From: Diadema antillarum
Taxonomy: Eukaryota
DNA: 64,000 nucleotides
Direction of reading: 5' to 3'
Assembly (NCBI RefSeq): GCF_040938485.1
Contig: NW_027272270.1
Coordinates: 310,001 to 374,000 of the forward strand
The notes beneath the pieces were generated by a model, which was given only the letters and a program-made list of their open reading frames with translations, did no database searches and was not told where the DNA came from. The translations under genes were made by a program, and so were the position numbers. Every line of letters starts with the position of its first letter. Within the stretch, counting starts at the first letter, position 1. Below are positions 13,231 to 41,064 of the stretch, one piece after another.

Positions 13231-13740
13231 CTTGATTTCATTCCGCTCCTTTCATCGTTCAAAATATGGCGAGACATTCGTCGCATTGGACGATCTGATT
13301 CTTCAATCATTATCCAAGTGTTCCACGATTCCAAAATAAGAGTCCAGCTTGAGGTGGCTAGTCGAGAGACAAATAGGACGTGCCCAAGCAGGAGCCTGTA
13401 CAGGCAGATCAGCTAAGTCGCCATGACACTTCATCATCTGCGCGACAAAATCTGTTGTTCGTCAATATGGAGGAGGAATCGTTCTTGTAAACATCCACTA
13501 TCCAATGTGTCCTGCTGCGAGCGTGCTCCAGTGCGTACAGCTATAGCTCGCCGTAAAATTAACGAGATGAAAATATGCGGTCATTTCGTTAGCAACGTCA
13601 TACGCGGTTCCCTCGCTACCGTCTTGGTAACCTCACTCATTATCATAATGTATTTCTTCGGCCGCTCTCTTCTCGCGCGAGACGTCGCGCTGCTCGTCTG
13701 CTCCGCTGTCAGTGCTCCATGCTGGGACACAGTCAGTGAC
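13231..13740 (-). promoter_or_regulatory. Candidate promoter and 5' non-coding exon of the CNGB-like gene
   Basis: CpG/GC-rich patch; minus-strand donor AAG|gtacgc at 13231/13230; the ATG exon has a strong acceptor at 8761/8762, so it needs an upstream exon. No transcript evidence. Confidence 0.3.
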
Positions 13741-14806
13741 AGTAATCCAAGGAGATAGACAATAATGAGACTTGAAGCATCATTGTGCTTTCTATTACAA
13801 CGCCATATTGAGGACTAGGACAGTACACCATGCACAGCATAACTTATCAAGATTAGCGTTCCACTCTATGCTTATGAACCGTCCTGTTAACAGGATCATC
13901 ATCCTATAATCACGATAATCCTACCGACATTGGCTGTGTTGCCTGTAATACAGGAAGAGTTAAGAGGACTTAGAACAACTATTATACAATAAAAAAAATC
14001 ATTGAAGGTTTTATTTTTGGTCAGCAAAACAAAACAAAACGAAAAACAACAACACACACACAAACAACCAAAGGGAAAAAAAAGTGAAACACAGAACACA
14101 AAACTCACCACAAAACAAACACACGCATGAATACCAACAAAAAGAAAACAAACGGACAACAAATACATCAGCTTCGAAACTATATGTTTCGCGTTATATA
14201 TGGTTTTCGAGGTGCGCTTTCTGACGGTTTCTACGTTGAATCACCTTTGTATGCAAGCTAATATGCTCAAAACCAATTAAAGAAAATCAAACATAATCCA
14301 TTTTCCTAAAACAAAATTTGATGTAAAAAGAATTCGGTTTTTTAATTGATTTTTATGTTTCAACATTCAAACGTGTATAAAGAATTCGAGTCTTGTATGC
14401 CACATGACTCAGGGTGCATGAACAAACATTGTGATGATGGATGGGTCTACGACAATTTATCAAGAAGTGGCGTTATATAGAATATTGATGTCTGTATCGA
14501 ATCAAGGTTATTCAAGAGATGGAGTCACGACAGTCCTATTCTCTTCGGTCCCATGTTAGATGCCCCCTCCTGAAAATATTGGAAATAATAAGTCGGATCT
14601 GCCTCACACATAAGAAAACAACAAATTTATGTCTCATTGCATGATAACCAGGTACTTTCTAAGCATGCTAAGAAAGAGAATATGTTTTATGATGATCATT
14701 TCTTTCGCGGCATCCCTACTTAGAAAAAATGAGCGGTACTTATATAGTAAAGACAGTGGGATGCGCGAATAGAAATTGCGCAGGCATTGTCGGATGTCTT
14801 GACAGG

Positions 14807-14963
14807 NNNNNNNNNNNNNNNNNNNNNNNNNNNNNNNNNNNNNNNNNNNNNNNNNNNNNNNNNNNNNNNNNNNNNNNNNNNNNNNNNNNNNNNNNNNNNN
14901 NNNNNNNNNNNNNNNNNNNNNNNNNNNNNNNNNNNNNNNNNNNNNNNNNNNNNNNNNNNNNNN
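14807..14963. other. Assembly gap (N run)
   Basis: Run of N bases, directly next to a dispersed repeat copy. Confidence 1.
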
Positions 14964-14969
14964 CTGGCC

Positions 14970-15370
14970 ATGAATCTGACATATTGATTTATAAAGAACT
15001 GCACTTGACGATTATACCATATCAGTTCCATTTGTCGGTATTAATTGAAAATTTGACAAAATTGGGGTTCCAGGAGAGTACAATTTACACTTCCACAACA
15101 TACAGCTCAGATTTACACATTTGCATACGTTGTTTATGGACGGAATGACTTTTCTTTATATGCTTTATCATGTGATGAAGTTTCATTTCATTTTATGAAT
15201 AAACAAGCAACGTATATATCCGACATTGTGTTACATAATAACATATAGCGTTCAAAATGAATCTTCAGATTACTCAACATCGATGGCGTAGCAAACGCCA
15301 AGATCAAATGCAGCGGTGGAGTCCTATTGAGCATCCACGGAAAACCGACAGCTGTTTAAATAATCATAGG
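14970..15370 (+). repeat. Dispersed repeat, unclassified; second copy at about 55590-55970
   Basis: Shared blocks TACAGCTCAGATTTA, ATATGCTTTATCAT, AATAAACAAGCAA, GAATCTTCAGATT, CAGCTGTTTAAATAATCATAG in the same order and orientation. Confidence 0.75.
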
Positions 15371-18299
15371 CGATTGAATTAAATCTCTTGTGCCTCCTTG
15401 ATCGAATACGACAATCAATGTTTAGCAGTCTGTGATTCGCTACAACATCAACATTTCGATACCCAATCCCCATTGGCCCACCCCGCCTGCCATCCATACA
15501 CCTTCTTTAGAACGCCAAGTGAGTCAGTGTTCAATTTGATACAGTTACTATTGAATTATATTGACCCTAACCAGATTTAAAGTCACTCAGTAAAACACTA
15601 AAAAAGTATTGTGGATATGGGGCAAAAACATATTTTTAAAAGGGAAGATATACATGGTTTCGCGCGTTTTGCAAAACAGTGATATAACTGGTCACGATCA
15701 CATGATATAAATGTAAATAAAATTTATAGACGATAGATCTTTTTCCTCATAATATAGGCATTTCCCAAAGATGTTCACTCATTTTGCACTATTAGAATGT
15801 ATACTTTCTTTTCATTACAGTAAACAAAGGTTAACCGTATATACTACAAATGTATTCTAAATTGTAACGACTTGGGAAGGATGGAAGTGAATTGTGCTAA
15901 CGGTTCCAATCGCTCTATTAAATGACGAAAAAATAATCACTTTTAGATTTCTGTGTACAGATAAAGTAGATTGTGAGTTGATGACATTACTGCCTCCTAC
16001 ATGTATTTCCATTGTGACCGCTTTCATATATCGAGGCAAAATATGAGAAATTTATAATAAATAGTATGAGTGGCTACATATGTTCAAACTTGACAATAGA
16101 GAAGAAAATGGCAAGCATTTATTCACAAAACAAAACAAAAATCAAACATATGTCATTTCGGAAAAAAAAATATTCAGAAAAGTGTCCAAGCGATGATGTC
16201 TTACCTTGTTTTCCTTGTTTGTCTTTGAAAATGCGTTCTACGTGATTTGCGTTGAAATCTAAATCTCCCATCTCAACTAAAACTGTATCATCCCTTTAAT
16301 GAGTGTGTTATATTGAAAAGAGTATGCCTCCGATCCTGAAAAGCTTCGGGACACATTTACAACATACATAGATGCACAGTGTCCACAGTGCCCATTATTG
16401 TTCCATTTTATACACATTACATGCATTGAAGTTCAGTCACCTTGTTGTTTCTTTTTCCTTTTAATAAAAAAGAATAGATCTAACAATTATATTCAGGTCA
16501 CATTAATGATCTGACCTCGTTGATATCACACCTTGCCATTGTTAAAAGAATAATTTGGCATTCTTTGTGATGACGTCATTTGCGTGGGATCTTTCCATGC
16601 TCTTTCGCCTCATACAACAGACATATTGATGGTCATTTTGCTACACTATCTTACATATTGATTATTGGAAACATTATGATCGTCAGTAGCAGGTGTTTAC
16701 TTCCCTTTTCTAGCATGGATTCTCTCACAATGTGAACAAGAAGAATAAACCTCACTTTTATCACGCAACAATATAGGCTGTTGGCGTCAATTATATCACA
16801 ATTGCGGAGCACCTGATTTTTACTTTATCCCGTATTTAAATGTAGACACTGGACAGTTAATTGTTACCGTCATTGCTGGTTTATAGTTGCAACAGTTTGT
16901 GATGCCATAGGCTATACAATGGAAAGATATTATACAGCGAAAATTCATTAAAATGTTCATTTTCTGCATGGAATAATGAAAGAGCAGATGACTTGCCTCC
17001 TTCAGAAGGCAGGGGAAATAACATGACCCTTTAGATATCATGTCAGTGACAAGTCGTTTGGATGCGTATACGTTTTTTTTTGTCTCACCTCCCTGGTTTC
17101 ACTGAGCAAAAAAAAAAAAAAAATGCTTTTCTCTTTCTTATCAACCAATAACGGCACATGAATTTCATCACAACTTTTTAGATTCGATACTTTTCTTTGT
17201 CCTATTTTCTTCAAATTTGGTTGATGTGATACTTTATATTATAAAATCACGTGCATTCACCGTGAATCCAGTTATATCTTTGGAGTTCATTTCCCTTTAA
17301 CAAGACTAGAATAGTCTTTAGTCGCGATGCATGTCTGTCTAGCTTCAATAGCATGCAGGGTCTTCATGTTTGCGGGTTTTTTTTCCCCAGAGTGCCTGTG
17401 CGTGTGAGCAGTAATTCAACGTTATTGTTTGTGTGTTGTGTGTGTGTCTCTGTGTGTGTGTGAGTATGGTTGTGTGTGTGTGTGTGTGTGCGTGTGTCTG
17501 TGTGTGTGTCTGTGTGTCTGTCTGTCTGTTTGTCTGTATAACTTAGTGTGTTGTGTGTGTGTGCGTGCATTCTATAGTGTCAAATCAACGAGGGACGTGA
17601 TCAGATCTATTCCTTCCTAAATAATTATATGTGTATGTATTATCATGTTTCTTATTTCCTTTTTGAGATTCTGAGGCTGCCATCACAATCAAGCACGTGC
17701 TTAAAGACGGCAGGCTCTGCATTTTTTCTTCTTCCTCTTTATTTGGAAACAAGTAGGCCTATATCGTCGATTCCTTTGATCTCATGCATTGTTGTTATGT
17801 TTATGCTTTAAAGATTGTGATTGTGATACTATGAATGTAATATTGCTTTTTCCTATTCTGTTGTCAGATACACGTGTTTTCATTTTCATATATGATTTCC
17901 TTGAAAAAAATGCAGAAATAAAATCGAACTGAACTGAACTAAAGAGCATTGTCTCAACCTCTACTACATTAAAAAAAAATATGTGCTCCAATTCACAAAC
18001 ACCGCCCCTGATATAAGTGATTCAAAGATCAAACACCACCGTGTACCGGCCAGAACAAGCGGAGAACATTTGCCGTCACTATCATTATGCGTCCCCAGCC
18101 TCCTTGAGTCAACATCCAGAAGATAAAATACCCTAATCTCCTCTTATCGCTCTCGTCAGCGCGAATCTATCTGCATAATCCATTAGGTAGTGGTCATAGA
18201 GCGCATAGTTGTAATTACCATGCGGAGTCGGTACGAGGGCAATGTCGAATCATTTGTCGAGATATCTTTACAAATGTCTGAATAAAAGAGGTCGAAAGA

Positions 18300-18604: not shown

Positions 18605-19987
18605 GTAAGTGTTAGTGGAGAGATACCTCTATGTCCACTTGACGATTCTAGGTCGTGTGAAACACCGTTGCCTTGGCGTTTTGCATCCTTTTCTGTCTCA
18701 TTATGTGCTCGCAAGCCACGGTACTGTCTCAATCATCACAACGACACAAGAGCTTTGAGAGTATGCAGATTCGATGGTGATGGTGATGATATGAAAGTGG
18801 AGGCAAAGAACTTAACCTGATCTTCGATGACCACTATCAATAATTATTGTACTCGTTTATATCCCGTCTGATTTGATGCTCTCGACGCGGCGTTTCCATT
18901 CCCGGAACACAAGTCATCAGATTTCGCAGAACGATTGTCCGTGTAGTGGTGGTGTTCAGCAGCCTTGTACATTATCATGATAAATCACTGTCTTGTTCTC
19001 CCAGTGGGAATATAGGAGCCCCGTGAGTATATTACATTCAATACCGCTGCTACTATAACAAGATAAACAAGTCCACAATATAATTATTTCATTCAACTTA
19101 CCGGGTGGCTCTATAGTGCAGATAGTGGCATATCAATATGCCAGGATATATCATCATTGTATAGTTTTGTTACGTGTTATTAGTCACTGTATATGTTTAT
19201 ATTTGAGCTTGGCTCACACAGATTTCTGTTAGGCACAGTGGAATCACTAGGCCATGATCATTGTATAAGTGGTGTTGGAAGTATAGTAGCAGGAAATAGT
19301 GCTGTGTACCATCGGAAGTGTACGTTCTACGTCAGGACTACAATCGGTTTTGCTTAAAATTCGAGGCCGAGTAGGAAAACAGGGAAAACGTAGCAAAAAA
19401 AAAAAAAGAAACCCTCAAAAGCAATTTGATGTTTATCATTTTCCAGTGATATTATCTTTTCAGTTGCACGTCCATATATCTTTGTACAAAGAAATCAGAT
19501 AAATGATCCGCTGTACAGTAGTGTAGATGGGTGTACAAAGGGTTTCTCGCTAATTTTCGTCACCTAGCTCTTAATATTTCAATTTCATCAATTTCGATTA
19601 AGTTTCGTTCGAAGGAGCTTACTGCCCTCAAATCCTAGCTTAAATTTTTGTCAGTTGAAATGAACAATCAAGTTTGGTTTACATTAGTTAACTGTCACTG
19701 AAATCCGTTTCTGCGATTCTTGGCGAGTTATGAGTGAGATCAAAATCGTCATTTTTCAAACACATTCGTGATCTTGTCATTCAAATTCGTCAAAATATTA
19801 AATGGGCCTTTTTATTCTTTTCTATTGAGGGTGTTAACCGCATCTTCTATACCATGCTAGTCAAGTGTGAATATTTGAGTGATTTCCGTGAAAGGGAAAT
19901 GTCATATAATGTATGGGTAAAGCGACGTAGTAATGTGATCAGTATAGACGATTCGATTAAGGCAGTAATTACAGTATTAAACTGTAC

Positions 19988-20012
19988 CAGGGAGATGGAA
20001 TACACCTCCCTG
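19988..20012. mobile_element. Ultra-short palindromic insertion, 25 bp (copy A)
   Basis: CAGGGAGATGGAATACACCTCCCTG; flanks ACTGTAC / ATTATAC (5 of 7 match, decayed TSD). Confidence 0.6.
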
Positions 20013-22208
20013 ATTATACCATAATTATAATCTACCTGGGGAATGATTATGATCGAGTGAAAACTTGACGAAAATGAATGCCACTCAGAAGACGACATTG
20101 ATTCTGCTAAGGTGTGGTCCTCAGCTATATGATCGACGAATATGAATTCCAGTTGACGAAAACGAGAAACAAAGCACAAACCTGAACAATTTCTCATACA
20201 GTATTGATGAAGAAAGGACAAAATTCGCACATTGCAGATAGTCCGGGACTTCATCGAAAACTCACTTTCAATTATTGAATGCAAAGATGACGGAAATAGG
20301 CGGGAAAACCCTACTGTATTCAAACTGTCAGTGATGCCAAGGAGGTCGTTATGAAGTAAATTGTAGCATTTATAAGGTCAAACGAGATTGAAGTAGGAAT
20401 GTCTACAATATTTGCAAAAATTTGCATTTATGTCAATTAATAGCTCATTTACTTGAAAACAAAAAGTATATGTACAGTATTTGCTGAGCTTATGTAATCC
20501 CTTTGCAGTGCTCAGGAGCTCTCACTATTCAATTTCAAGAATTGTCATGGGGCATGCACTCAACGTTTTGTTGGTCTAGTCATAGCGGTCCATGGTCTAA
20601 TATAAATTTATTATGCTGCCAAGTTGCGTCATTGTTGATAATATTCTGTCGCCACGCCGACGAGAGCATTACATGGTCTTTTAGTTATCTCGTTTAATAA
20701 CGTATAGCAAGGGAGATAATTTGACGCACATGTGATACGTATCTAACACCATTATTAAAGTGTAGGCCCTACATGATAATGGCGCTCCGAGAGCCTGCAC
20801 AGTATGTAATTATAATGGACCGTACGGTATACACCCATTAGATTAGTACCCCCCCCCCCGCATTCATAAATCACACCTGCCTACGGCTACGATTCACATG
20901 GGTTACATGCAGCACTGCAAATTTATAGATTTTGTATATCAACATTTCCACGTTCGACTTCATGGCAAGCACGCAAACGTTGATCGTCCATGTACTATTT
21001 TTATGATCACGACAAGCATCTCGTCTCTTGGACGCCTAAGCAGCTCCATTGTTTATTCAACCGAAATTCAAAGTCAATTATGATAGTCAACTGTGATATG
21101 TTGCTGTGGTTTAAGTAGCTGAAACTGAAATCGTAACCCATTTGATCGTAAACACCTCCCTTTAAAAAAGAATAGTCCGTAGCAAATCGATGTACATTTA
21201 TTGTCACTTATTCCCATCTTTCATCAGAAAATCGATCTTGTTCTCATATGTGTTGTTTGTTCAGCTATGTGCTATTTTTGCCCGATGTGGTCACAAGCCG
21301 AGAGTTTACCATATTTCCTTTTCGTTTTTATTTCAATGTCATTCGCTCTTCTCAAATGGAGATGATGTTTCGATGTTACATAACATAATTATAATTATGA
21401 TAAAATTGATTTACGAAACTGAAACAAGAGTATAAGTTAATGGTGACATTAAGGCAATGATCGTGAACTGAACGAAATAAGAAATGCGATCAGGCCTGCT
21501 TGATACCAATTAACTGGTCCCGTAAACTATTGATGTTGAAAGCATATGCGGGAGATGGTAAACTAACTTTACAATATATAAAGGGGAGAAGTATAGCGGT
21601 GAGTGCCAATGAACAACATTACACGTGGGTGCAAAAGTCAACGCGCTGTCATGAAAGGGTATAATATGTCTTGATATTTTGAAACTCGGCAGCACGAGGT
21701 GTGCTTCAATAAGATAAAAGAGGCGAGAGTATATGAGATTAACCAAGAGAAGATATAGTCACTGCACATTTAAGCTATTTGCTCTGTTATAACCCGAGAT
21801 ACTTGTCAATGTTTCAGCGTCACTCGTGAGGGTATATATAAGCATACTTTGTAAAGGAGGAGGGGATGGAATGGGATTATCTTTGCCTATGGTTAGAATA
21901 CTATACTTGTGAACTTATGTCTCATTCTCTGTTATATTTCTCTTTTCCAAAAGATCTTCCAGCTGAACATGCCTCATGGAGAACTATGTCTGAAGGCGGA
22001 ACATTCACAAGACCAGTATTCAACTTCTCAACATCACAGGGAAACATGCCAGCGCCGAGTCAAATTTGATCATACAGACGTATTATACTCTCACCCATGC
22101 GGTTTGCCTAGCTTGTCATACTGTTCCAAGGAGAGGACTGCTAGATACCTTCGTGCAATATCACAAAAATCCGAGTGGATGACGACAAATTAGTTTCTTG
22201 TACCTTAA

Positions 22209-24664
22209 ATGAGCGATATGGCCAGGCCAACCGCTAGAACCACTGCAGCAGTTGCATCGATGTTGCTATTATGCGGAGTCGTGTACCGACTGGCGAACAG
22301 TGATAGCTACAGGACGATGTACCCGCAGCGAGTTAAACTGTCTGCCTCAAGACACACGCATACCGTTTCGTTGACCGCTGTCAGCCACGTGAACGCCACG
22401 CAGCCGACGTCGTGTCGACGGCTGTGGAAAAAAGGAACGTCGGCGTGGTTCGACAAGAAATTCCGGCCAGAACTGCTCCCCGTTTGGGTGAAGGAGAACA
22501 CGAAATTGCCGGATGAAGTGGCCAAGTGGTGGGTGGTAAGTCTTATGGCGGCGCCAAAAATCAAAACAAAACTTTTGATATTAGTTATAAAATGTTTGAA
22601 GTTTAACAGTTTGAAGGGAACACTCTCTGCAAGACGTTTTTTTTTTTTTTTCAAAATGGGAACAAACCAATAGGAAAAGGGAAAGGAATCTTACCGTTGA
22701 CACGGACTAGATTTTCTCGAAACAGTAATATGGGTGAGGGTGTGTCATTATAGTGCGAATAGGCGACAATTCAAGTTGCGATAATACTAGAGGGTTATAG
22801 ACAATCATCACTTAAAATAAAAACAGTACAGACAAAAGTCGGATCTCTGTCTGCCAATGCCTGGGTATCATCATGGACCTATATTTTTGTTGTAGGTCCA
22901 TGGTATCATTCAGCTGTTCGTTATACCGTAATATGGTTAAACACCGGCTACCTGTCATGGCATGGCATGATGGGCACGCCCCCTCGCTCTTAACATGCGA
23001 GTATTAAACGCAGGGTTCGACATTAGCGGTGGTCCAGGTGGCCTGGGGCCACTGAGAATTGATGTCGGGCCACCAAAATTTCCAAAAGGCTACCCCCCCC
23101 CCCCAAAAAAAAAAAAAATGCTATATTTCCGTTTATTTCGGGCCACCAAAATTTCAGATTGACAAGTTTTAGTGGCTCGAATGGGCCTCGAAAGGAAAAG
23201 GTTAGTGTCGAGCCACAGTATCACATGTGCTATATAGCTGGAACTACATGGGGCATGCAGAGTTAGATTCCTACTACCAAGAATTGGGCCTGTAGATGGA
23301 GATGATTATCGTCCCATACAGATTCCTGCCTTCAACTTAAAGGGATCGTATAGTTTTAGTTAAGACCTAATTTCAGGTTTCTAACGTTGTTTTTTTTTGT
23401 GAGATCATGAGAAACCTCTGAAATATGAAAGGGAATATAATTCTATGAGGAATTCAACGTTTATTTGATGAAAATCGGTTTTGAAATGGCTGAGATATCC
23501 GAAAAGACCGATTCTGATAAAATGTGGGACCCACACTTTTTTTACGATCGCTTTGTTTTACTTTGTTTTCTGGATGTTTCAGTCATTCCAAACCCGATAG
23601 TCATCAAATAAACTTTGAATTCCTCTTAAACTGGTATACTCTGTACTATATAATAAGTGTTTTCGTGGTATCTCGCAAAAAGTTAAAAGCCCAATTCTCA
23701 TCTCCACCAATACTGTACCATCCCTTTTGGAAACCTTTTGGTCCCAAACCAAACAGCTGGCAAAATCACGCGCCATGTTAAAACCCAGAAAACTGCTGCT
23801 GAATAATAATCATTAATTTACTTGCCGGTATTATCGCTTGTAGTTACTTACTGCCAGTGCTAATTAGAACAATTTAAGCGCCGCAAGTTCATAAACTCTC
23901 TTTCCAAGGGCCTTGATGCAGTATTGGAAAAGGTAAGACCTATAGGCTCAAGTAAATATATGTAAATATGTCTTGTTCTTATAGAACCAAAAGTGATAAA
24001 GCAAAGATAATACCATGAGTTTGTACATTGATAACTTTATTTCCAAGTTTTTCATTGCGAATTCAGGGTCCACCCCCCTTGGAGTTGGGAGGGATTCATA
24101 ATCATGTAGACCATTGTCCTAGATTAAGGAATACTCACAAGTATTCTTCTCTAGAATCAGAAGTGATAGAGCTTTAAGTCATTCTTTTCTTCCAAAATGC
24201 ATAGTCCAACCTTCTATGAAGTATATGTACAATGTACTTGGCAGGTATTTTTACCAGTGTGATAGAAAATGCAAATGGACATCATGCTCCAGCTCTCAAA
24301 GCTGCCCCCGCCCCAAGTTTCCAACGCTCCTAGGTACGAGCCTGCAAGAACGCATGGAAGGTGAACTTGCGATACTCAGGTGAGCGCGAGACCCCCGGGT
24401 CTCTTGCTTTGTTTTTTCCTGTCAGCCGATGAAACCCCGAGATGGCACCATAAATAATTTCCCCTGATGCACTGAGGTGTGAGGGAAGTTGGTAGCTGTG
24501 GGATATCAGGATACTAGAAGAGCGTTTATGACAACATCATAAAGCATCACTATCACTATAGAGATATTCTACCAATAAGTAGACACGGTGGGCGTGTACA
24601 CCACGGGGCTCTTGGGCGATATAATTTCACAATGTTCAATGTTTTGTGTGTGTGTGTGTATGTA

Positions 24665-24697
<33 letters not shown>

Positions 24698-27600
24698 TAT
24701 TGAGACAGTGCATATCTGCCTCATGATTTATAGTGTTGAATATGATATACTCCTTTCACGGAAGTCAGTGATATCACTCACTGATATTCCAGCCTGTTTT
24801 CCACTCCAATTCACCGGAGTTAACAATGCCAGCACTCTATACACGGTGCAGTACGCAAGAATAGGCAAAAGCATGGTGATAATAGAGTTACGTGTTGTAG
24901 CTCTATGGTGATGATAATGATAAGTATACTGTATAGGCATACTGTAGTTATTGGCGTGATAAAGTATGATAGCCCTAACTACATATCGACCACCCTCTTT
25001 TAAACCGACCGCGTATTAATTGGCGCACTGAACGCTTATTACGCACTTCACTGCGCGCAAAGCACATAAAAATGGATTGGCTTTGACTGTTGATGAGGAT
25101 GGTGTGGGGAAAACACGAAAATTCACTCATTAATGGTTTTAATCCAGGACAAACTTTCGAATGAATATTTTCACCGAATCGTAATGTAATGTCTATGGAA
25201 GTTTCTAAAAAGCTTCGTACAACACGGTGTTCAATACAACTCGGCTTGAGTGGATTGTCAATGCAAAAACAGCGGTCGATCCTAACAACGAGCGTTACCG
25301 CGGGGAGCTGAAACGAGGCCACGCAAGTTCGTCGGCGATATTTTTGCACTGAAACTTCGAATCGAAAAGGGAACAACGGCATTTGATAGAGCTGGATTTT
25401 CTCAATCACGTAGGTCAAGTTTTTTACGTGAATTTCAGTGTTAGATATTCTTATCAAGCAAATAGACATTAGGCGGTCGATGAGTAGTAGGTCCAACCAT
25501 ACAATTCGTATATCACCGCAACGCCTGAGAAAACGGTTACACTATATTTCAAGGTTGCTCACTTTGTGTCTTTTACCCACTGATCTCTATGTAACTTATT
25601 ACATAGAAATCAGTGCTTTTACTCCCACCCCGTTTCATTCCCTGTTGTTCTGAGTCACTGTTGTTTCCTTCATTTCTGTGCATGGGGGCGTTGCTCGTTC
25701 TTGAACATGGTGCACAGTGACTAGTTGGAGCTTTGCTGAACCATGATGGAGCTACGATAGCTCCTAAGGTTAAGCACGGGGAACAATCACTGTATAACTA
25801 TAAAATTTTTCTCTTTTTTTTAAGGGGAGGGGACCGACAAAATGATATAGGCCTACTTGGAAATGTGGTGTACTTCGAATTGACGGATCAAACGTTCGAA
25901 TTTGAGGGGCTTTAATCAGATTTGTGGAGAGCATGCATACTTTGGAGTTCAATAGACACATACGCTATTATCACGTCATTGCACCAGTTTACTGGCGAAT
26001 TTTCAAAAAGTTCGCACAAGGATTATCTGTGGTGAACTTTAATAGGCTCGCCAAGGTGATGGTTTTTCCAGTGCCAGTTATCGTTTGTTTTTTAGGCTAT
26101 CAGTAAAAAAAAAAAAAAAAAAAAAAAAAAATGAATTTGGAAAAAGCATGCAACAAAAGTCGGATACGGGCCAAAGAGTTTACTGTTATTCTGTACTTGT
26201 CCATAGCAAAGTTTGAATCCCTGATTACAGTTATCCCAGAGACATACTTGTCATATGCGAGGGGGGGGGGGGGGGGGAGAGGATTCTTCTATCTTGGCTC
26301 AAGATTCTGAGCTCGCGGAGCGCATTGCTTTTGCTGCAATTGAGTCATGACGGCTGTATGCGTGGTACCGTGACAGTTGCTGTTGTTGTTGCTGTATGCT
26401 TTTGTTTTGCCACTTAAAATAGGGGGTGGCTAGTAACTGATCGATGGGAATCAGTGGGAATGCTGGGGGATGATTGTTCCAGTCCTTTAGGGATACATTT
26501 AAGAGAACATTATATATCTATTGTTGTGTGGAAATTATTTGCTTCAGAATTGTCTCATATTGTCTCACATTTTTCACCAGACATTTAATTGCTAACTGTC
26601 TTGGAGGAGTCTGCGCCTTTGAATGTTTCTGTGACAGATATATGGCGCCATACAAATGCTGTGGATCATCATCATCATCATCATCATATTCAAGTAATGT
26701 GCAGTTTAATGCCCCGTCACTGTACAGGCATGTTAACCTGGAAACATTAAACTGCACATTACTTGAATAATATGAGACCATTCTGAAGCAAATAACTTTC
26801 ATACAACAATAGATTTATAATGTACTCTTAAGTGAATCCCACAAGGATTGGAGCAATCATCATCCAGCATTCCCACTAATTCCCACTGATCAGTTACTAG
26901 TCATACCCTTTAAGCGACACCATATCGTTCCGTTAAGATCAGCTGAATTTTGAATACACTCAGTTCCACATTCGTAATACGTGTTTATAGGCCTATCTCT
27001 TCGCCCTTTCATCGTACATATTATTGATTATAATGTTAAGAAATATAAAGTATCTCTCGACTCTATCGATGTTGTATGCCTTGCATATATCATCGCATCA
27101 TGCGTGTATATACATTTATATACTTTTACTTTTCTATACATACAAAAATCTATGTGTTTATATCTATGTGTGTGTGTGTGTGCGTGTTCGTGTGTGAATT
27201 TGTAAGCGAGTCCCCAAAGAGTGTGGAGATACGACAGTTCATGTATCACAGCAGGGAGGTGGCTTCCACCTCCCTGATCACAGTAAACGTGGCTCTGACT
27301 ACGTATATACCATAACAAACACACAAACACACCCGATTCTTACTCCCACACCACCCCCATAATGTGCTCTTCTTACAATGTAGGCCTACTTTTCAGACTC
27401 TATCAAATCATCTGTCCTGTGAACTGTAGCACAGCGGATACAATTTCTTACCGGGCCTTTTTATTACAGGAAGATTGTTTGCAATTCATGTAGCCACTGC
27501 GATAGAAAAGCTGGTATAAAAACCACACCCACCCACTCTTTGTTACCACCACCTTCTTCAATGCTCAGCGCACTGACGTACGACTAGAGCAGGGAGGTGG

Positions 27601-30600
27601 AACCTCTCTTCCACTTCCCTGACTAGAGTATGAGAAAAGGGGAGTTGGATAATTGTTCGAGTTATGTTCAAGCGAACTTGTTTCTCCCACAGTTCATAAT
27701 GAGGTTAAGTTTGAATAATGATAAACCCGCACAAAAGCTGACAGTCTGCGTAGAGATGAAGCTTTGAAGATTTTTGAGCGGCGAAAGAAACTGCAATTGA
27801 CGATCTGAACTGAAAGCTCAGATTAGAAATACAAAACAAAACAAAAACAAAACAAAAACAAAAACAAAAATAAAAACAAAAACAGAAAATGACGTTATCA
27901 TAATATAGCAGTGATCAAAGTACGTTCTCGAGGCTTGTCGATAATATCAATGTAATTTCCGGTATGGCTTGATGGTGCATTATAGCATTGATTCACTATT
28001 TCGCACAGAATAAATGAACCCAACAAAACAAACAAAGAAGCAACTACAACTAAACAAACAAACAAACGAACCTAACAGAGTTCGAGGATGTACGTCGAGT
28101 TTTGATCATGTGACTCGTGTTGCGTTGAGAAGGGTGCGTTGAGGCCGTCACTTCTCATACTAAGTATCTTCGCACCCGCCGCGTCTCTTGACTTTTTATC
28201 TGCCTTATCCAATAGAGCTACAACGAATGGACTTCTCATCAAATCCGCCTTTGTACACGGACCTAGTATACATATGTATACGTATGCGTCTACACATACA
28301 GCCTGACCTCCCCTATCCGGAAATGTCGGGACCGGCGCTAATTCGGATAAAGGATTTGGCCGGATATGGGAGACTGGATATTTTACACACAGATGCCTAC
28401 TTAATGGTAGCTTTAACGTGTGTATAAACATCAATTTTGGGTGAACATGTCCCGTCATCGTCAGCTAGTCTGCGTTCAGAATTCTCTGATAATTTGCTCA
28501 ATGAACGATTGCCTGTACGTACCATGCTCTGATTTAATGAAAAGTTTTCTGTCCATGTTTCTGCGGTGATTTGGAGGTAGTGAATGTCTGAATGCATGTT
28601 ATTTGATGATGAAAATTAGGTGTGAATATATCTCACTTTTGTTGAGGATAATATATGCAATCTGTGTGAGGTAAGGAATTTTGTTGAGTTTGAAATCCCC
28701 TTTCTCCCCGTAATTACTACACTGGGAAAACATCACGCTTAGACCGCATCCGGGTAATTGAGAGATTCGGATAGTAAATGAAGGCCGGGTAGGAGAGGTC
28801 GGACTGTACATGCATGAACATTAGTATTTTTTTTTAAATTGTAATCTACTAATGTTGGTGCTGTTGTTGTTTTCTGATTTCTGATAGTTTTTTCAGATTT
28901 CAAAAATACCTTAAAGCCATAGGATGATTATGCACAGGTATTATTTTGTACAGCTGTATTTTACATGTTTGCAAAACGATATTTCAAAGATACCTGAAAG
29001 CCATTTATATACGAACTGCACAGATATTTGTACAACTTTATTTTGTTTCTATGGATGCAAAACGATAAAAAAAAAACAGTTGACAGGCAAAATTATTATT
29101 CTCTTCTCCACCTTTAACAATGTTTGCTGACGACTTACGGATATAGGAAATGTGATCCATAACTATAGTAACGGACCAGCAGAGTTACGCCTTTTACCAC
29201 AATCAATAATACATGCCAGGTGTGTTTACTCTGACGTTGTTGAACCGTGTTTTTTGTACAGTATCGGATAAAATAAATCATGTATGTGACGTGTTTTCTT
29301 TTGTCATTAATCAATTCGCGCCATCACTCAATTCAGGAGAGTCCCTTTCTGTGCCTTGCAAAGAGCGTTACATCAGTTCGTTATTCCGAAGGTTCGTTCA
29401 TACCTGATTTAGGGTGCCTTGCAGTAGAAACCTGGCTACGATTCATATGTTGGTTTGTGTTTGTTTGTTTGTTTATTTGTTTTGAACAAATATGGTTTTT
29501 AGCCATCGTGAAATGTGAAAATATGCGTATCAACATTTGAGTTGGACAGTGACATCGGAAAACATGAAAATTATCTTATCGAGAATAATAAAGATGAATT
29601 AAGGAACCAGAATCTATCAATATTCACATTCACATTCACATTAAACAGACAGATATAAGATGATTTATGGGGAGGTACATTCTAGGATTTAAAAGCAGAT
29701 TAATCCTGTTGGAGTTCAGTTTTCATTTTTAAGCTAGGTATAAACGTTTGGACTATACGTATACCTCATAAATGAGCTAAAACTTTAATTTGCCCAGTCA
29801 TGTGTGAAATGCGAAAGAGAACGTTTTTATTGTCATTCTAAAGTTTTGGTAGGTGGGGTTTAGAGCGTGCGGTGCGCACTTGTATAGTTACATATGTTAT
29901 TATACTCTCTAATTTCATACAATATTATCCCAATATTAAATGGGTTAGTCAAATATCGGTTAGTGATTGGCTAAACACAGTCACGTGATGGAGGCATATT
30001 GGTTACGTTCGCCCATGGGCAGAACATTTTTATAATGTTCTCCTATGGGAAAACATTTTCACGTAACAAATCACAAACGATACCAAACGATTTCACGCAA
30101 TCGATAGGATAAATTTGCCTAACCCATGACTAACCCATATGATATTACAGATGATGACTTTTGTTGTCGGGAACATGTACCAAACGTTCCACCCTCAAGG
30201 TTTGAAATGTTATTTCGGGAGGCTATATGTCCCTCGACTTCGTCTCGGGACTTATAACCTCCCTCAAAACAATGGGTATGTTCCCTCCCCCGCCAGTCAT
30301 CATCTACTGTACACAAGTACGATGGTGGTCAGTTCTACCTGTTTATGCAGTGATGGCAAGATTTCCTCGAACAATGCTTAATCCTACCAGTGCATGCAAC
30401 GATGTTGAAAACTCTTCTCTTGAAAATGAGGAGACCATTCAAGGCTGACTATGGCCATGCATGGTCACATTATCCACCATTCCAGATTTTTTACATCAAT
30501 TTTTTATATCATAATAATATAGTAAATATCATAATCGTGTCATGAAAACTCGTAAAGTTACGCATCTTGTCTGCATTCACTTATGCAACTAGCCACTGTA

Positions 30601-33600
30601 CTGACACCTTTTCAAAATATTTTCTGGTTACCGCGCTTAAGTTTCCCTTCTATTCTTCAACTTCAATTAAAATTGTACATTAGCGAGTAGTTCAAATTTG
30701 CAGAGGCAATGTGACTGTTGCCTATTAATGTTTACTATTACATGCCGCCACGATGAACATCAACAAATTGTCAAATTCCTTTTCCTTGTAGTATGTTTGT
30801 TTGTTTTTTTGATCGGATACAAGCCCAATAAAATTTGTCCTGCTTGCACATTATGTGATATAATTATGTGTTTCGCAACTTATTAGATGATTCATGTGCT
30901 TATAATGCATGTTTGAAGCAATCATCATGGAATTATATTCTGGTAATATAATATACTGGTAATTTCTCTTGAGGTCTGGTGGCAACCGTTGTTTCACTGA
31001 GTGGAAAGAGAACTATCCGGGTCACTTTTATTGGAGGAAAACAGACAAAATGGCAGCCCAAGTGCTAGTGCTAACATTAGCGCAGCTGTGCATATCAACT
31101 TTGCAGCGATTATGATTACTCAGATAAAAAGCCGCATCATAAACCTCTATATGATTTATAGTGGTTTTGATTCAGATTGTGACGAAATCTGTTCGGATCA
31201 AGTGCTCAATCATTTTGAGCCGTATGGCACGGAAAAATAAGTTTTTACATTTCGGGATTCAATTTTCATAAAGCCAACTGGGGAGTTCGAGCGAAAACAA
31301 CTGTTACAATGTCTCAAAATGTGTTTTGTATGCTGTAACTTTTGAAGGTGATAGTAATTGTCTTCAATTGTATATGTATAGATGGATGCTGTATCTAATC
31401 TCGAAGCATCGATAAAAATGACGAATTCACTGTGTTTGCGTAGAAGGGGAAAAGGCATTGGGAAAAATGAAAAGAAAAGAAAAGAAAAGAAAAAGAAAAC
31501 AGATACTAAAAGAATACTGTTTATCTGTATTCGAATTCGTATCCCGACGATTTATTTCGTACAGCGTTATGTGCTGTAAACACTAACAAGTGTAATAAAG
31601 GCGTCATTAACTGGGAATGATGTGAATAACTTGTGCATGATTTTGGAACAACAACAAACAAACCCTGTGTACAGCTTCCATAATTAGGGGTAATCTTATG
31701 AGGGAAAGGGGAAGAGAAGCAGGTGGTATAGAGCATATAAGTAACATAACGCGAATTTGATGGGAAAATCTTCTGACTGCCTGTGTAGGAGGGTTACCAC
31801 CAGGATGAATTATGTTTTTCTTGCATAATACCGGGATACCCGATCTAGGCTATAACACACAGCACCACCCAGCAGAAATTTACAAATTTTTAATCGAAAG
31901 AAAGAAGACTAAGAATTTGAAAGACAACGAGATATTGCTACCATTTTGTAAGATGCCTTCAGGTTTCCAACATATTTGTGAGATAATGAGATTATGAAAA
32001 TAATATGAAAAAAAGATACAATTCTAAGAGGAATTCCAAGTTTATTTGTTTTTTAAAAAATGGTTGTGAAATGGCTGAGATATCCAAAACCAAAGAGGTC
32101 TTATCAAAAGATGAGACCCACCTTTGATTAGACCCACTTTGTTTTTGGATATTTCAGCCATTCAAAAGCCGAGTTTCATCAAGATAAACCTAGAAATCCT
32201 CTAGGAATTATGTTCTGTAATATTTTGTATATGGTTTCCCCTTATCTCGCCAAAGGTCGAAATCTGAATTTACCTTCTCAACCAAAACTATACCATCCCT
32301 TTAACCATTTCCATATGCAAGCCGATTACAGCAATATTTTTATTTTCTCCCATAAATATAATAATGCTCATGTTGTCGTGTGCTTTAATGGACCCATCGT
32401 CATGTGTCGTGCCGTGATATTTTCTCTAATTGTGTCCCTGTGCGTTGTTTTTATGACATCTGTATTTGACTGGTTATCTCCACTGGGCAAATTAGATTGT
32501 TTAAGGTGTATTGTCTGCGGAGCTGTTTATGATCTCGGCCCGTAAACTGCAGATGAATGTCTCTCAGTGCAGTGTTTGCTATATCAGGGAGGTGAGCACC
32601 TCCCTGGCTATATAGATGCACACGGCGTTGTATGGAAGAACTATTGGGCTTACAACACACACGGTATAATATATTAGGAGTGTTGGGTGCCTTAGACTTT
32701 TTCTTTTATAGACAAAGACAGAACAAAGATGATATCTACACCAAACAATTTCTCAGTCACACGAATACATTAAGCAGGTCATTCTTTTACATGTAATTCT
32801 TTGAACTAATCGCCATCTTTTCGATTCTTGTCACGTCCCGACTCGTAATCAGGATTGCGATGATACATCTGCCGAAATACACCTTCCCATGGCAACCAAG
32901 TGTAGGAACCATTTTAAACTTCGTGTTCATATTCGCGCCGATGAGAAGCCCGCATTCAAACAAGGCTAATAGCATGATGCATCGTGACGCGGATAACGAA
33001 ATGCCGCACGCATCATCGTCGAGAAGGCTAAATAAAACGTCGTTAGTGAAGGCATCAATCAGAAAACCTTGTATAATACCTGATAAAAACCGATGGTGAG
33101 GGTGTTGATTGATAAAAGCGTTTAGAATCTTGACTACCACCTCAGGAGGCTGGTAGTCTGGCCGAAAGAAGTCCGATACCGCTCTCGACGTTGTTTTCCA
33201 TATTGGACTGAAGCTCGCGTGAGCTTGTTGAGTGAGAGTCTCCCCAATCGTTGCGGGATTCCTGAATCATAATATTCCGACCTTCGCAATACATAGTCTC
33301 CCCATGATACAGGCCCTTTAAGAAACACTTGGCCTTTTTGGCAAATTCTATGCAGACATGGAAAATCTACTTACATGTGTACTAGTCTTTGTGTACACAA
33401 GTCAATACTTCGTAAACCGATGTATAGATCGAATATACATTGTACTGTGCTTTCGTTCTCCACACTTTCTCAACCTATCGCCTTCCACGCACAGCACGTG
33501 ACATGGTGGTGTGTAATGATTTCGAAGTAAACATTCCGCGCTATATGATTCATCATCGTACTTACACGTGTCCCCATGTACACATGTGTTCGTTTTTTGT

Positions 33601-37038: not shown

Positions 37039-40000
37039 TACCTACTTTGGCACAATCAAAGTACATAACGGTCAAAAAATGAACGCCAAAGTATGAACAG
37101 GATGGATCACTATTACTCAACTTTACATAAGATTTATGCAAGATACTTCAGCAGGGTTTGAAGAGAGGCACAAAACGGGTTCAAACTAATTTGTTCGGAT
37201 ACTAATTCAAGTAAACTGTGATCTTATAAGATCGTGCAGTGGTGACTAAAATTGTTAGAATACTTGCAAATTTGTGATTATATTTTCACCGCAAGTCTAC
37301 CAGAGAGAGATATATCTTCATTAGTGCATCCATTTGAATGTTGTCAAGGAATATGAAATTATAGTTATTAGTCTTGCTATAAATCTCAAAAACTAAATAT
37401 GAGTAATTAATCAATTGAGTGCCTACATACACTGTTCCCGAAAAAAAAAAATCGTGGTCAGTATTCGATTTTTGTGTTTGTTCCCTAGTTGTTCCTGATG
37501 ATTTCACAGATAGTGTTATGTGTATACTGTTCTCTGAGACGCTTCTACAAACAATTCCAATCGAAGCTAGACTTTATGACAGTCATAATGATATATTTAA
37601 TCAAATTAAATTGAAAAGTGATTTCGTTTCTTTCAATATTGCACATTACTGCATTTGCTTTTCTTCACTTTTACCTACTTCCTTTCTTATTGTTTTTTTC
37701 GTTTGTCTTTGCAGAACGTATATGGCCGTCAGATCAAAAATAAACGTTCCCCCGTCAAAGGTTAGTGAAACCCTTTTCCTCTTCCCCATGGGTACAATGT
37801 CGCAAAGTAAGATTAGAATGTAAGAGGTAGCAAATGCTTCTCGTTCGTAGAGAACGCCTGGCAGCCAAAATACACGTCTCTTATAAAGGTGTGGGGTTTT
37901 TTTTAGTAGTGTCCTTGTACCAATGAAATGGACTGAAGCTCTAAAATGACGTGCAGATGGTGATCCTTAACTTCGAGGATAAGCTAAGTACGAAGATAAG
38001 CTATGCTCTTAGTTAATAACGGTGCGCCAAGTGTCGTATTGTCTCTCTTTCGTCACGAAAAAACAATTTGTCATGTCGTGACGAAATTGACGTTGTCACT
38101 TGTCAACGGAGAACATCTCCGTCACAAAATTATCGTTTCGTGATAGAATGACAATTTTGTGACGAAAGAAACAATGCGACACTTGGCGATCCATGCTTAA
38201 CTACGAGCTTATTCTCGAAGTTAGCTTATCCTCGAACTTAAGGATCACAGTCTGAACGTAATCAAGTGTGGATATACACTGTAAAAACATCGGTGTTAGA
38301 TTTAACACCACGGGTGTTAAATCTAACACCGATCAAACTTCAATAAAGGACCACACCCACAGGTGTTAAAAATGCACTATGATGGTGTTGAAAAGTGTTC
38401 ACCTGACACTTCGTGGTGTTAATTTGACACTGTACCTGGTGTTATTTTGACACTGTACTGGTGTTAATTCAAAAATGACACCACATGGTGTTGATTTGAT
38501 ATTTGTTGGTGTTTATATCAATGGTTTAACACCCGTCCAGCTTCAATAAGAGACCACACCAGCTGGTGTTACTTTGGTGTAAATTTATTTTCACATTTTC
38601 TCGAAAATCTAGTATTTTAACGTAAAATTCTTGATCGTCTTGTTTAAATTAAAAATCAACAAGAAGTGCAGTTACTAAGAAACTCTTCAAAAAACAGTTT
38701 AAAATTTGGAAATGACACCCGGGGGTGTTAATTTAACACCATAAATGAGCACCGAAAAATTAACACCAGCTCGGTGTTCACTATTTAACACCGGACTTTT
38801 TGCAGTGTAGGAAGCAGATGAATGCAGAGTATCTATACGTGATGATAGACATGCAAATGACACCTAAATGACCGTATACTTCTTTTTTGACTGGCAGTAC
38901 CTGGTCATCCTTAAAAAGACGAAACTAAATCAAAATCAAACAACTGAAAACGGTTCAGATCAATTAGATATCAAAAGGCATATCATAAGTTTAGAGTAGG
39001 GCCTACATGACCGCGCAAGGTGATCGATAAGTGATAAAATCCGCGGATAGCTGTGACATCAAAACAAATGCGATTGAAGGTCTCGTTCATAATCATTGAT
39101 TGGAGTGAAGCCGGGAGGCATTTACGAAGTTTTGGGTGTTTGAATTCGTGCAGATGCTGTTCTTTAACCCTGAGCTGATGTGGCATATTCACCACGACTG
39201 GATCGACAAGAAGGGGCGATATCCTTCCTCGGGAACTCTCGGTACTTTCTTCGCCCTGCAGTTCTGTGACGAGGTAAGTAGGAATGGGTCATCCCACGAG
39301 CTGGACATCCACGAGTCGTACGGTACTCTAGCTAGACATTGAAAAGAAGGTCCACGAGTCATACAGCCCACGAGTCATACAGCCCACGAGTCATACAGCC
39401 CATGAGCTAGACAGTAAAAAAAGGTCCATGTGTCATACAGCCCACAAGTCATACAGCCCATGAGCTAGACAACAAGTAAAACAGGTCCACTAGCTGTAGA
39501 CACTAAGTTAAAACAGGCCCGTGGGGTAGACACCAGGCAAGATAGGTCCATAAGCTCGACATTAGGCAAATAAGGCCCACGAGCTCAAAAGAAAGGCCCA
39601 TGAGCTACGTACATTAAACCAGCCCCGTGACGTAACGTCGAACTCATGGATCTTTTCCCCCCTAGTGTCTAGCCTTTAAACAAGGCGACTCGCTCTGCGT
39701 GCCCCCGTATAGCGCGTTTACCCCACGAACCTGTTGGCCGGCGAGTGGAGCGAGCCACCTTTATCCACTCGTTCAGGGATGTGTACTTTTGTCGTTGTTG
39801 TTGCTTTATATTCTTTGACAAATTTGCGTACAAATTTGACGCAGAAAATACACACGGCACCAAGGCAAGCCTCGTTAATATTAAGTAACTATTCTTATTC
39901 TACTTAATATTAACGAGGCTTGCCTTGGTGCCGTGTGTATTTTCTGCGTCAAATTTGTACGTAAATTTGTCAAAGAATATAAAGCAACAAAAACGACAAA

Positions 40001-40153
40001 AGTACACATCCCTGAACGAGTGGATAAAGGCGGCTCGCTCCACTCGCCGGCCAACAGGTTTGTGGGGTAAACGCGCTATACGGGGGCACGCAGAGCGAGT
40101 CGCCTTGTTTAAAGGCTACCTAGTGTCGAGCCCCTGGGCTGTATTACTCATAT

Positions 40154-40191
<38 letters not shown>

Positions 40192-41064
40192 GCACACGCA
40201 CACACACTCGTGTTTTACTTTCATGGTTTGAAAGTGACTGCCTGCATGCTATTTTACATATGACGAATACTTTCTTTTCCATACTTTTACAAGACTTTCA
40301 TCTTGGGTGATTTTTCATACCTTCTCATATTATTTTGTTTGCCTACTTTGTATCCCCGATTTTTCTTTTAGGTTGGAAAGGAATGTAACCTAATCAACCC
40401 TCCCCCCCCCCCTTTGTTTGTAGGCCTACTTCTTGTAATTCCTCACCTCATCTCTCCTCACTTCTCTTTGCTGTCTTCTGTTCTGGTATATACTCTTCTC
40501 TCCTCTCCTTTTACCTCTGTTCTTGAGATGGATTTGTCAGGGAGGTGGTGTTATCATCCCAAGAGTAGAGTCTTTTCAGTATTAACATTGTTCCTCCAGA
40601 GGCCCCCAACAGCCATCACACCCCAACCCCATCAACCCCCCCCCCCCCCCTCATAGCATTACCAGTTTCCTAATTACTCTTCTGGTAAAGACGGGACTTA
40701 TAATGAATTTACACATCATGTCCGAAAGACTGAGCACGGGGGGGGGGGGGGGGACCGAACATAGGATCTAATACTTGAGAGCCAAGATCTTTATTTGCTA
40801 CACCACAGTGGTCCTGATTTTATTAATTTTATCCTTTTCTCCCCTTTTTTTCTTGTGTGCTCCGGCATTTTCCGAACGCAGGTGAGTGTATTTGGCTTCG
40901 GCGCCAACAGCAAAGGATTCTGGGACCACTACTGGCAAAAGGACGACGGCGCCAGAAATTCCGCTTTCCTCAAGACCAGGGTTCACGACTCCACCCACGA
41001 AATGGAACTTATCACTCGACTAGCCGAGGAGCAAAAGATCACCTTATTCAAAGGGGTCAGGTAG
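22209..41064 (+). CDS. ST3GAL1: CMP-sialic acid beta-galactoside alpha-2,3-sialyltransferase (GT29, ST3Gal I/II type), complete, 348 aa. Exons: 22209-22535, 35204-35394, 35924-36103, 37715-37760, 39154-39273, 40882-41064
   Basis: All junctions GT-AG with matching phases (1047 nt). Type II membrane anchor (TAAVASMLLLCGVVY); sialylmotif L ([41 protein letters not shown]), motif S (PSSGTLGTFFALQFCDEVSVFGF), motif III (HYW), motif VS (HDSTHE); family motifs MYPES and FKILD. It cannot be separated from ST3GAL2 and is probably co-orthologous to both. Confidence 0.93.
23011..23217 (+). mobile_element. Older, degenerate copy of the CAGGGCTCGACACTA MITE
   Basis: CAGGGTTCGACATTAG ... GTTAGTGTCGAGCCAC with GGGCCACCAAAA repeats; no clean TSD. 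Confidence 0.7.
23341..23725. mobile_element. Kolobok-like non-autonomous DNA transposon (TTAA|AGGGAT... termini)
   Basis: TTAA at 23337-23340 then AGGGATCGTATAG; right end CTGTACCATCCCT; internally palindromic core (AATGGCTGAGATATCC) shared with 31927-32300. Confidence 0.6.
24060..24407 (-). mobile_element. Partial copy of a second HINE-like family (see 42520-43189)
   Basis: Terminus CTGCAAGAA...GGAAGGTGAACTTGCGAT.CTCA..TGAGCGCGAGACCCC..GGTCTCTTG and interior TCTCTAGAA.CAGAAGTGAT are shared with the 42.5-43.2 kb copy. The left boundary is approximate. Confidence 0.6.
26418..26909. mobile_element. TTAA-flanked foldback MITE with ~130-bp inverted arms (Kolobok-like)
   Basis: 26430-26560 is the imperfect reverse complement of 26769-26900 (CTAGTAACTGATC ... 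GATCAGTTACTAG); TTAA at 26414-26417 and 26910-26913. Confidence 0.7.
27252..27276. mobile_element. Ultra-short palindromic insertion, 25 bp (copy B), 7-bp TSD ATCACAG
   Basis: ATCACAG | CAGGGAGGTGG CTT CCACCTCCCTG | ATCACAG. Confidence 0.8.
27590..27621. mobile_element. Ultra-short palindromic insertion, 32 bp (copy C), 7-bp TSD ACTAGAG
   Basis: ACTAGAG | CAGGGAGGTGGAA CCTCTC TTCCACTTCCCTG | ACTAGAG. Confidence 0.8.
31927..32300. mobile_element. Second copy of the Kolobok-like element
   Basis: Right end CTATACCATCCCT|TTAA; core GAAATGGCTGAGATATCC and its inverted counterpart GGATATTTCAGCCATT; left end decayed. A solo right end also occurs near 16284-16300. Confidence 0.6.
32585..32606. mobile_element. 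Ultra-short palindromic insertion, 22 bp (copy D), 7-bp TSD GCTATAT
   Basis: GCTATAT | CAGGGAGGTG AG CACCTCCCTG | GCTATAT. Confidence 0.8.
36965..37040. repeat. (TA)n microsatellite in sialyltransferase intron 3
   Basis: Seen directly. Confidence 0.95.
37947..38261. mobile_element. Foldback MITE, ~315 bp, imperfect palindrome along its full length
   Basis: Left GTGATCCTTAACTTCGAGGATAAGCTAA pairs with right TTAGCTTATCCTCGAACTTAAGGATCAC; inner CGCCAAGTGTCG / CGACACTTGGCG and TTTCGTCAC / GTGACGAAA. TSD not resolved. Confidence 0.75.
38277..38807. mobile_element. CACTA/EnSpm-like MITE, 531 bp, 2-bp TA TSD
   Basis: TA|CACTGTAAAAA ... TTTTTGCAGTG|TA; many internal GGTGTTAA/TTAACACC repeats in both orientations. 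Confidence 0.8.
39286..40150. mobile_element. Foldback element of the GGGTCATCCCAC / CACGAGTCATACAGCC family, interrupted by a nested MITE
   Basis: Starts GGGTCATCCCAC (reverse complement of the 50389-50400 end of another copy); ~16-bp CCCACGAGTCATACAG tandem units; right arm resumes after 40118 and is lost at a (CA)n tract. Confidence 0.75.
39670..40118. mobile_element. Near-perfect 449-bp hairpin MITE with 9-bp TSD CCTAGTGTC (Mutator/foldback-like)
   Basis: Arms 39670-39887 and 39901-40118 (218 bp each, 4 mismatches counted by eye), 13-nt loop; CCTAGTGTC at 39661-39669 and 40119-40127. Confidence 0.92.

Follow-up and report, generated by a model that had tools for sequence, protein, structure and literature searches.

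The locus analyzed here raises the question of what the full signature of a transposon means when almost nothing lies inside it. In the window, the whole stretch of 64,000 nucleotides of Diadema antillarum DNA that was analyzed (positions 310,001-374,000 of contig NW_027272270.1, with runs of N at 9039-9277 and 14807-14963), four palindromes of 22-32 bp consist almost entirely of two inverted tips. A sequence-only reading had proposed that they are either unusually small mobile units or the remnants of longer elements. The four palindromes lie where that reading placed them, three of them between exact 7-bp direct repeats and the fourth between repeats that agree at 5 of 7 positions. We consider it very probable that these palindromes are scars left by the excision of a longer cut-and-paste transposon, and not mobile units themselves. 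The joint claim, that they are excision scars and that an enzyme of the P type made them, is the one toward which we lean, with less assurance. The evidence consists of the anatomy of the scars, a limit on the length of their arms, and a living parent element that shares its tips, duplication length and target preference with the scars and is polymorphic in its insertions.

Both copies of the duplication are kept exactly at three of the four window palindromes, whose coordinates are given in Table 1. Scar 1 has a left arm of 13 nt with one G>A change, followed by a TA filler and a right arm of 10 nt, and its flanks, ACTGTAC and ATTATAC, form a decayed duplication. Scar 2 joins arms of 11 and 14 nt without filler, with exact ATCACAG on either side; scar 3 has arms of 13 and 18 nt with 1 nt between them and one mismatch in its right tip, and is flanked by exact ACTAGAG. 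The arms of scar 4 measure 12 and 10 nt between exact copies of GCTATAT, its 22-mer is found again at other loci, and its tip belongs to the subfamily of the living 1.56-kb element described below. The four scars fall within 12.6 kb. When the tip motif CAGGGAGRTG was searched with at most one mismatch, the window gave 22 matches, compared with a mean of 3.85 and a maximum of 9 in shuffled sequences. A profile search of the six window open reading frames (ORFs) of at least 150 aa returned no Pfam match, and there is thus no sign that the scars lie in coding sequence.

Genome-wide searches were performed on a partly diploid assembly of 1.75 Gb in 2,963 contigs, and the lengths of arms and elements as well as the target tally were taken by eye from the match listings. 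Two tips facing each other across a short gap (CAGGGAGRTG-N0-20-CAYCTCCCTG, 20-40 bp in total) were found 4,192 times with perfect 10-nt tips required, against 0 matches for the reversed control, which bears out the high genome-wide count that had been predicted from the window. The predicted enrichment of duplications was also observed, as 8 of 15 sampled copies outside the window had exact 7-bp duplications and 3 more had duplications matching at 6 of 7 positions. The 10-mer CAGGGAGGTG alone occurred 27,087 times (reversed control 1,375). When 100 of its occurrences were read by hand with their context, about two thirds lay in two-armed scars, often with one tip imperfect, and this sample suggests, as a rough estimate, that the assembly holds more than 10,000 scars. 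The consensus of the sequence-only reading, CAGGGAGGTGGAA, is just one of several tip subfamilies, which have the start CAGGGAGGTG in common and then diverge into GGAAGAGAGAC, AGACAAAA / AGAGGAAA, GGGAAGAG, TGAGAGAG and TTAGAAAAGG. Among the first 50 distinct short forms listed, 47 were 20-34 bp long; lengths between 20 and about 34 bp form a continuous series, and the centres are varied.

The arms of the scars correspond to the outer 10-20 nt of terminal inverted repeats (TIRs) of about 31 nt, and their length is bounded by a sharp wall. At least 14 nt of the AGAC tip are present at about 2,400 sites (count corrected for the 3/4 filter). In the first 100 AGAC-tip sites, arms of 14-20 nt are followed directly by the full 31-nt TIR of whole elements, with none between. 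About 240 sites that are not elements reach 18 nt of this tip, and 78% of them end exactly there; the few arms of 19-20 nt are about as frequent as the chance occurrence of A and then G predicts. All 81 of the 81 sites that reach 21 nt are ends of whole elements. In the GGAAGAGAGAC subfamily of the window, where the tip is followed by GAAGAGAGAC, at least 45 independent scars have an arm that ends precisely at 20 nt, beyond which lies either unrelated sequence or the partner arm. At two sites, C9:3774366 and C490:306929, the GGAAGAGAGAC-subfamily tip runs on into sequence similar to the inner TIR half of the other family, and these sites may be decayed or diverged element ends. Such a wall points to a fixed cut position, as a staggered cut predicts, and we infer a cleavage offset that differs between subfamilies, being 18 nt inside the TIR in one of them and 20 nt in a second.

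The proposed sequence of events is as follows. A transposon would insert, making a 7-bp target duplication, and would later excise. The transferred strand would be cut at the element tip and the other strand about 18-20 nt inside the TIR of about 31 nt, so that a long 3' tail consisting of the TIR tip would remain on each flank. These tails, alike in sequence and not complementary, would be trimmed and joined by end joining. The expected product is the duplication, then the left tip (up to 18-20 nt), any filler, the right tip (again up to 18-20 nt) and the second copy of the duplication. The junctions can be compared with this scheme. In scars of the 1.56-kb subfamily, one arm is of the AGAC type and the other of the AGAGG type, as expected of arms from opposite ends of a single element, and one scar of 33 bp has arms of 18 and 15 nt with nothing between. 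Most junctions among the listed forms are unique, and those that recur (21, 22, 23 and 25 bp) are the forms that pairing of 1-2 nt of the tails (AC, CA, C) would be expected to give. Other junctions show a few additional nucleotides or short duplicates of the adjacent arm, and one holds telomere repeats: the scar at C58:2447184-2447244 carries about three TTAGGG telomere-type repeats between its arms, as though telomerase, or a template from a telomere, had taken part in break repair.

Excision products of this kind are known from the P element of Drosophila. Excision of P{wa} leaves 17-nt non-complementary 3' TIR tails on both flanks (PMC2895639, PMC7776569), and the resulting junctions retain the two duplication copies together with no more than 17 nt from either end, with recurrent joints at 2-nt microhomologies and templated insertions (PMC2895639). 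The echinoderm scars resemble these footprints in that both duplication copies are kept around outer parts of the TIR, each no longer than the single-strand tail, in that joints recur at microhomologies of 1-3 nt and insertions are templated, and in that the cut, putative for the scars, lies just 5' of an AGG..TGG motif in a TIR of about 31 nt. It is on account of these P-like features of the junctions and of the wall that we read the palindromes as excision scars. They differ from the fly footprints in the length of the duplication (7 bp here, 8 bp in P), in the length of the putative tail (18-20 nt compared with 17 nt) and in the TIR sequence, which is unrelated save for the AGG..TGG motif; moreover, the enzyme here is a candidate only. 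In addition, the fly footprints are laboratory events, whereas thousands of scars are present here in the genome of a wild echinoderm.

The excision reading calls for a longer element with the same ends, and the sequence-only reading had likewise called for longer or transposase-coding elements with the same TIR. We found about 70 copies of an element of about 1.56 kb, with ends CAGGGAGGTGAGAGGAAAAGGAGTGGGCACT and CAGGGAGGTGAGACAAAAAGGAGTGGGCACT and TIRs of about 31 nt, although none coding for a transposase was identified. Pairing of end coordinates placed about 55 of 68 copies between 1.48 and 1.70 kb, with one of 659 bp and a few of 1.9-13 kb. Since allele lengths at one and the same site differ (6,680 and 1,612 bp; 8,819 and 13,164 bp; 4,763 and 1,587 bp), nested insertion probably accounts for the long variants. 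The first 67 nt are nearly identical among the copies, which indicates a young family, and the flanks differ at every locus. An exact 7-bp duplication is present at all 28 of the 28 loci for which both flanks were listed. In the duplicated 7-mer of 49 loci, T occupies position 2 and A position 6 in 38 loci each; at position 1 there is G in 23 loci and A in 15, and at position 7 there is C in 28 loci and T in 10. The target consensus is therefore the palindrome RTNNNAY, with GTNNNAC as the commonest form, and the same bias is seen in the flanks of the scars. A parent with the same termini and duplication length is thus available for the AGAC/AGAGG subfamily, to which window scar 4 belongs.

Insertions of the 1.56-kb element were heterozygous at all three loci that were compared with the other haplotig, and the family has for this reason probably been mobile recently. 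At the C165/C104 locus, the unoccupied allele carries a single copy of TGCGAAT with the right flank immediately after it, which is the empty site that the sequence-only reading had anticipated. The second locus looks empty on the other haplotig on the basis of its left flank. The third locus departs from a simple empty site: the occupied allele (C42:950361-951972) reads GTCAGAC-element-GTCAGAC-CCATG, and the unoccupied allele (C116:134728-134798) reads GTCAGAC-GTTAC-CCATG, with the 5 extra nt GTTAC exactly at the insertion site. The predicted right junction of the C42 element had no match in the genome, which is explained by this 5-nt difference between alleles. GTTAC could be a scar without tip sequence, or could mark a small deletion made at insertion. 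A second type of long element was observed at C2:2317345-2319870 (2,526 bp), with TIRs of about 30 nt beginning CAGGGAGGTGTTAGAAAAGGAGAG; further ends of the CAGGGAGGTGTTAGAAAAGGAGAG type occur at C1:634880 and C2:856570, and no match to the P RNase-H-N domain was found on contig C2, which hosts the 2,526-bp element.

Tip pairs with longer gaps do not extend the series of short forms toward these elements. Gaps of 21-50 nt (41-70 bp in total) gave 264 matches and gaps of 51-80 nt (71-100 bp) gave 37, with 0 for the reversed control in both classes. Many of the 41-70-bp matches are a single 48-bp form, and most of the 41-100-bp matches that remain are two scars lying adjacent or nested, some with a 7-bp duplication of their own; the 41-100-bp classes are consequently not a tail of the 20-40-bp distribution. 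Only about 0.3 close pairs of scars would be expected under random scatter, and their clustering therefore points to local reinsertion. The recurrent 48-bp form was considered as a longer family and rejected, since its flanks are conserved from copy to copy and place the scar inside another amplified repeat. The 20-nt GGAAGAGAGAC tip (764 matches) was rejected as a longer element in the same way, most of its copies having the conserved flank cgtacgtcaggc, and about 160 tip pairs 240-270 bp apart also have conserved flanks and lie within a larger repeat. Old scars, each multiplied hundreds of times, are carried inside at least three other high-copy repeats: one has the 48-bp form, another a 27-bp form with a solo tip about 245 bp away, and a third a 20-nt arm that follows cgtacgtcaggc. 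Such passengers inflate motif counts and mimic MITE (miniature inverted-repeat transposable element) families.

Regarding the enzyme, we infer that it belongs to the P / THAP9 superfamily, which is favoured by the long stagger, the TIR of about 31 nt, the cut-site motif, the 7-bp GT...AC target, the presence of P genes in the genome and the clustering of the scars. P transposase cuts 17 nt inside a 31-bp TIR, and so long a stagger is described as atypical and particular to P (PMC7776569). The P cut falls just 5' of AGGTGG, and the putative cut here just 5' of AGGAGTGG. Within the same superfamily, Galileo and 1360 make 7-bp duplications, and the Galileo consensus is GTANTAC (PMC4168063, PMC3698922), a palindromic GT...AC target like RTNNNAY; unlike the ends described here, Galileo TIRs are very long and foldback-like, and the likeness rests on the duplication and the target. 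P elements also reinsert nearby (PMC7776569), which fits both the clustered and nested scars and the presence of four scars in 12.6 kb.

Mapping of PF12017 and PF21787 matches revealed many P-type transposase genes with the full domain set in this genome, including at least 84 matches to the P-transposase RNase-H-N domain (PF21787), some of them in long open frames. About eleven P-type copies (C400, C643, C91, C99, C224, C518, C984, C1246, C527) have near-identical scores and ORFs of 637-658 aa, and have the look of a P family that is young and multi-copy; this family is a candidate for the origin of the enzyme. The closest public P-type relative, with 69% identity, is located on a contig of a metagenome assembly, which was fetched with its flanks. 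It has a 30-bp inverted repeat starting CACTGAACTG that encloses the gene in a span of 7.6 kb (7559-15142), without a matching target duplication, and this repeat says nothing on the scar family.

Several results weigh against the reading of the palindromes as scars of a P-type transposon. Of the 84 PF21787 matches, not one falls within the roughly 70 long copies that were mapped. No tips were found within 1.5 kb of 12 P loci, no pairs of TIR and duplication were present in those loci, and a 300-kb scan of extracted loci gave no long tip pairs with duplications. No transposase gene is tied to these ends, and the assignment to P is to be read accordingly as the favoured candidate. A whole element with the exact 20-nt tip of the GGAAGAGAGAC subfamily, to which scars 1-3 belong, was not found. 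At none of the three tested loci does one allele carry a whole element and its counterpart a scar. Rare forms have arms of 23-30 nt, which reach beyond the putative cut, and would need a second route. The arm lengths and the target tally were taken from the listings by hand. Finally, a CAGGG tip and a T...A target are typical of hAT elements also.

This last point leads to the alternative that survives best, namely that the scars arose as described and that the enzyme was hAT-like, or of an undescribed superfamily that also cuts far inside its TIR. It draws on the resemblance of CAGGG to hAT termini (Ac/Ds, Tol2 and Hermes share the CAG-type tip), on a hAT target preference with T at position 2 and A near the end, and on the lack of a P transposase within the mapped elements. 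The duplication of exactly 7 bp at 28 of 28 loci contrasts, however, with the 8 bp typical of hAT elements, and hAT excision forms hairpins on the flanking DNA, alters the duplication slightly and leaves no TIR remnant, so that it cannot give arms of 18-20 nt. Considering also that the 7-bp GT...AC target matches Galileo and that a long stagger is described as particular to P (PMC7776569), we regard a non-P enzyme as unlikely.

A second alternative accepts longer parents and changes the route. Whole elements could have collapsed to their tips by internal deletion or by abortive gap repair, in which synthesis from a sister copy would stop early on both sides and the ends would anneal. P-type and other elements do make internally deleted derivatives in this manner (PMC4168063), and both the single 659-bp deleted copy of the 1.56-kb family and the rare forms with 23-30-nt arms would fit. 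Such a process should nevertheless produce arms of any length, and 0 of the approximately 240 arms that reach 18 nt extend to 21-27 nt. It should also produce many products of 40-500 bp, which are missing, the range of 41-100 bp being nearly empty once hitchhiking copies and adjacent pairs are removed. We therefore give collapse little credence, less than a non-P enzyme. The earlier proposal that the palindromes are remnants of longer elements is right as to their origin, given the parents of about 1.56 kb, while its route of internal deletion or gap repair misfits the stop at 18-20 nt, and excision followed by end joining takes its place.

That the short palindromes are themselves mobile, as the smallest known transposons moved by the family's transposase, is very unlikely: inverted tips with 7-bp duplications, identical forms of 21, 22, 23 and 25 bp at many loci with different duplications, and the clustering and nesting of scars would all suit it, but lengths vary continuously, most junctions are unique, the recurrent forms are expected from 1-2-nt microhomology like the recurrent fly junctions, the scars lack the inner half of the TIR (positions 19-31) that P transposase contacts through its helix-turn-helix domain, all larger "families" (48 bp, ~245 bp) are passengers in other repeats, and local reinsertion of whole elements explains the clustering equally well. 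It would be just as surprising if some of the recurrent 21-25-bp forms had been re-mobilised by the family's transposase and were not only scars; if true, these would be the smallest mobile DNA known, and their movement would explain part of the clustering and nesting. The scars also share features with MITEs, having inverted termini, target duplications, no coding capacity and a high copy number. MITE families, however, have a shared interior and a characteristic length and amplify as units, while the scars have no internal sequence, are continuous in length and look like independent events.

If the palindromes are excision scars, as we hold, they are of a kind already textbook for the fly P element, here preserved by the thousand in the genome of a wild deuterostome. 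They form a natural record of excisions, and from sequence alone they indicate where an uncharacterised enzyme cuts; this record suggests that conservation of the unusual long P-transposase stagger extends far beyond insects. To the known excision products the present analysis adds a living parent family, with its duplications, target motif and heterozygosity, and the wall in arm length. The 1.56-kb family, being probably recently mobile, is a candidate system for experiment. The scars are, in addition, a hidden source of small palindromic insertions that repeat finders miss and that can be mistaken for tiny transposons.

Table 1. Palindromic scars and unpaired tips in the window (positions are those of the 64,000-nucleotide stretch)
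Feature	Position	With duplications	Length	Strand	Tip or arm
Scar 1	19988-20012	19981..20019	25 bp	.	GGAA-type tip
Scar 2	27252-27276	27245..27283	25 bp	.	GGAAG-type tip
Scar 3	27590-27621	27583..27628	32 bp	.	GGAAGAGAG-type tip
Scar 4	32585-32606	32578..32613	22 bp	.	GAG-type tip
One-sided scar	17078..17095		18 nt	-	arm CAGGGAGGTGAGACAAAA running into poly-A/T tract
Lone tip	40538..40547		10 nt	+	CAGGGAGGTG, without partner

Two solo half-sites had been proposed alongside the four palindromes, and they proved to be of different kinds. The first is a real one-sided scar, without a partner arm and without a second copy of the duplication. The second amounts to a 10-nt tip; it is probably a one-sided remnant, because its 10-mer is about 20-fold more frequent than chance genome-wide, although a single copy cannot be proven to be one.

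A second haplotig, C933, matches the region of the window: 12 mismatches and some insertions and deletions (indels) were seen in 4 kb, and 3 mismatches in 3.8 kb. The assembly thus carries both haplotypes, at least in the window region, and genome-wide counts consequently include allelic duplicates. Scars 2, 3 and 4 are all on C933 too, scar 2 being unchanged there, and no presence/absence difference between the window and C933 was seen for these three scars. The window also contains a 129-bp stretch (26555-26690) that is absent from C933; the 7-bp direct repeat TCATATT stands at either boundary of it, and a CAT microsatellite forms its end. This stretch is either an insertion with a 7-bp duplication or the counterpart of a deletion between short repeats; a 29-bp indel lies near it.

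Other repeats were observed in the right part of the window. At 39670-40118 there is a foldback element with two arms of 218 nt that are 98% complementary, with 13 nt between them. It contains a tip-like CAGGGATGTG, and since this sequence lies well inside the arms, the foldback is not a member of the scar family. Between 40400 and 40760, long homopolymer runs (C12-14, and G14 or longer) and a (CA)n tract occur within a few hundred bases.

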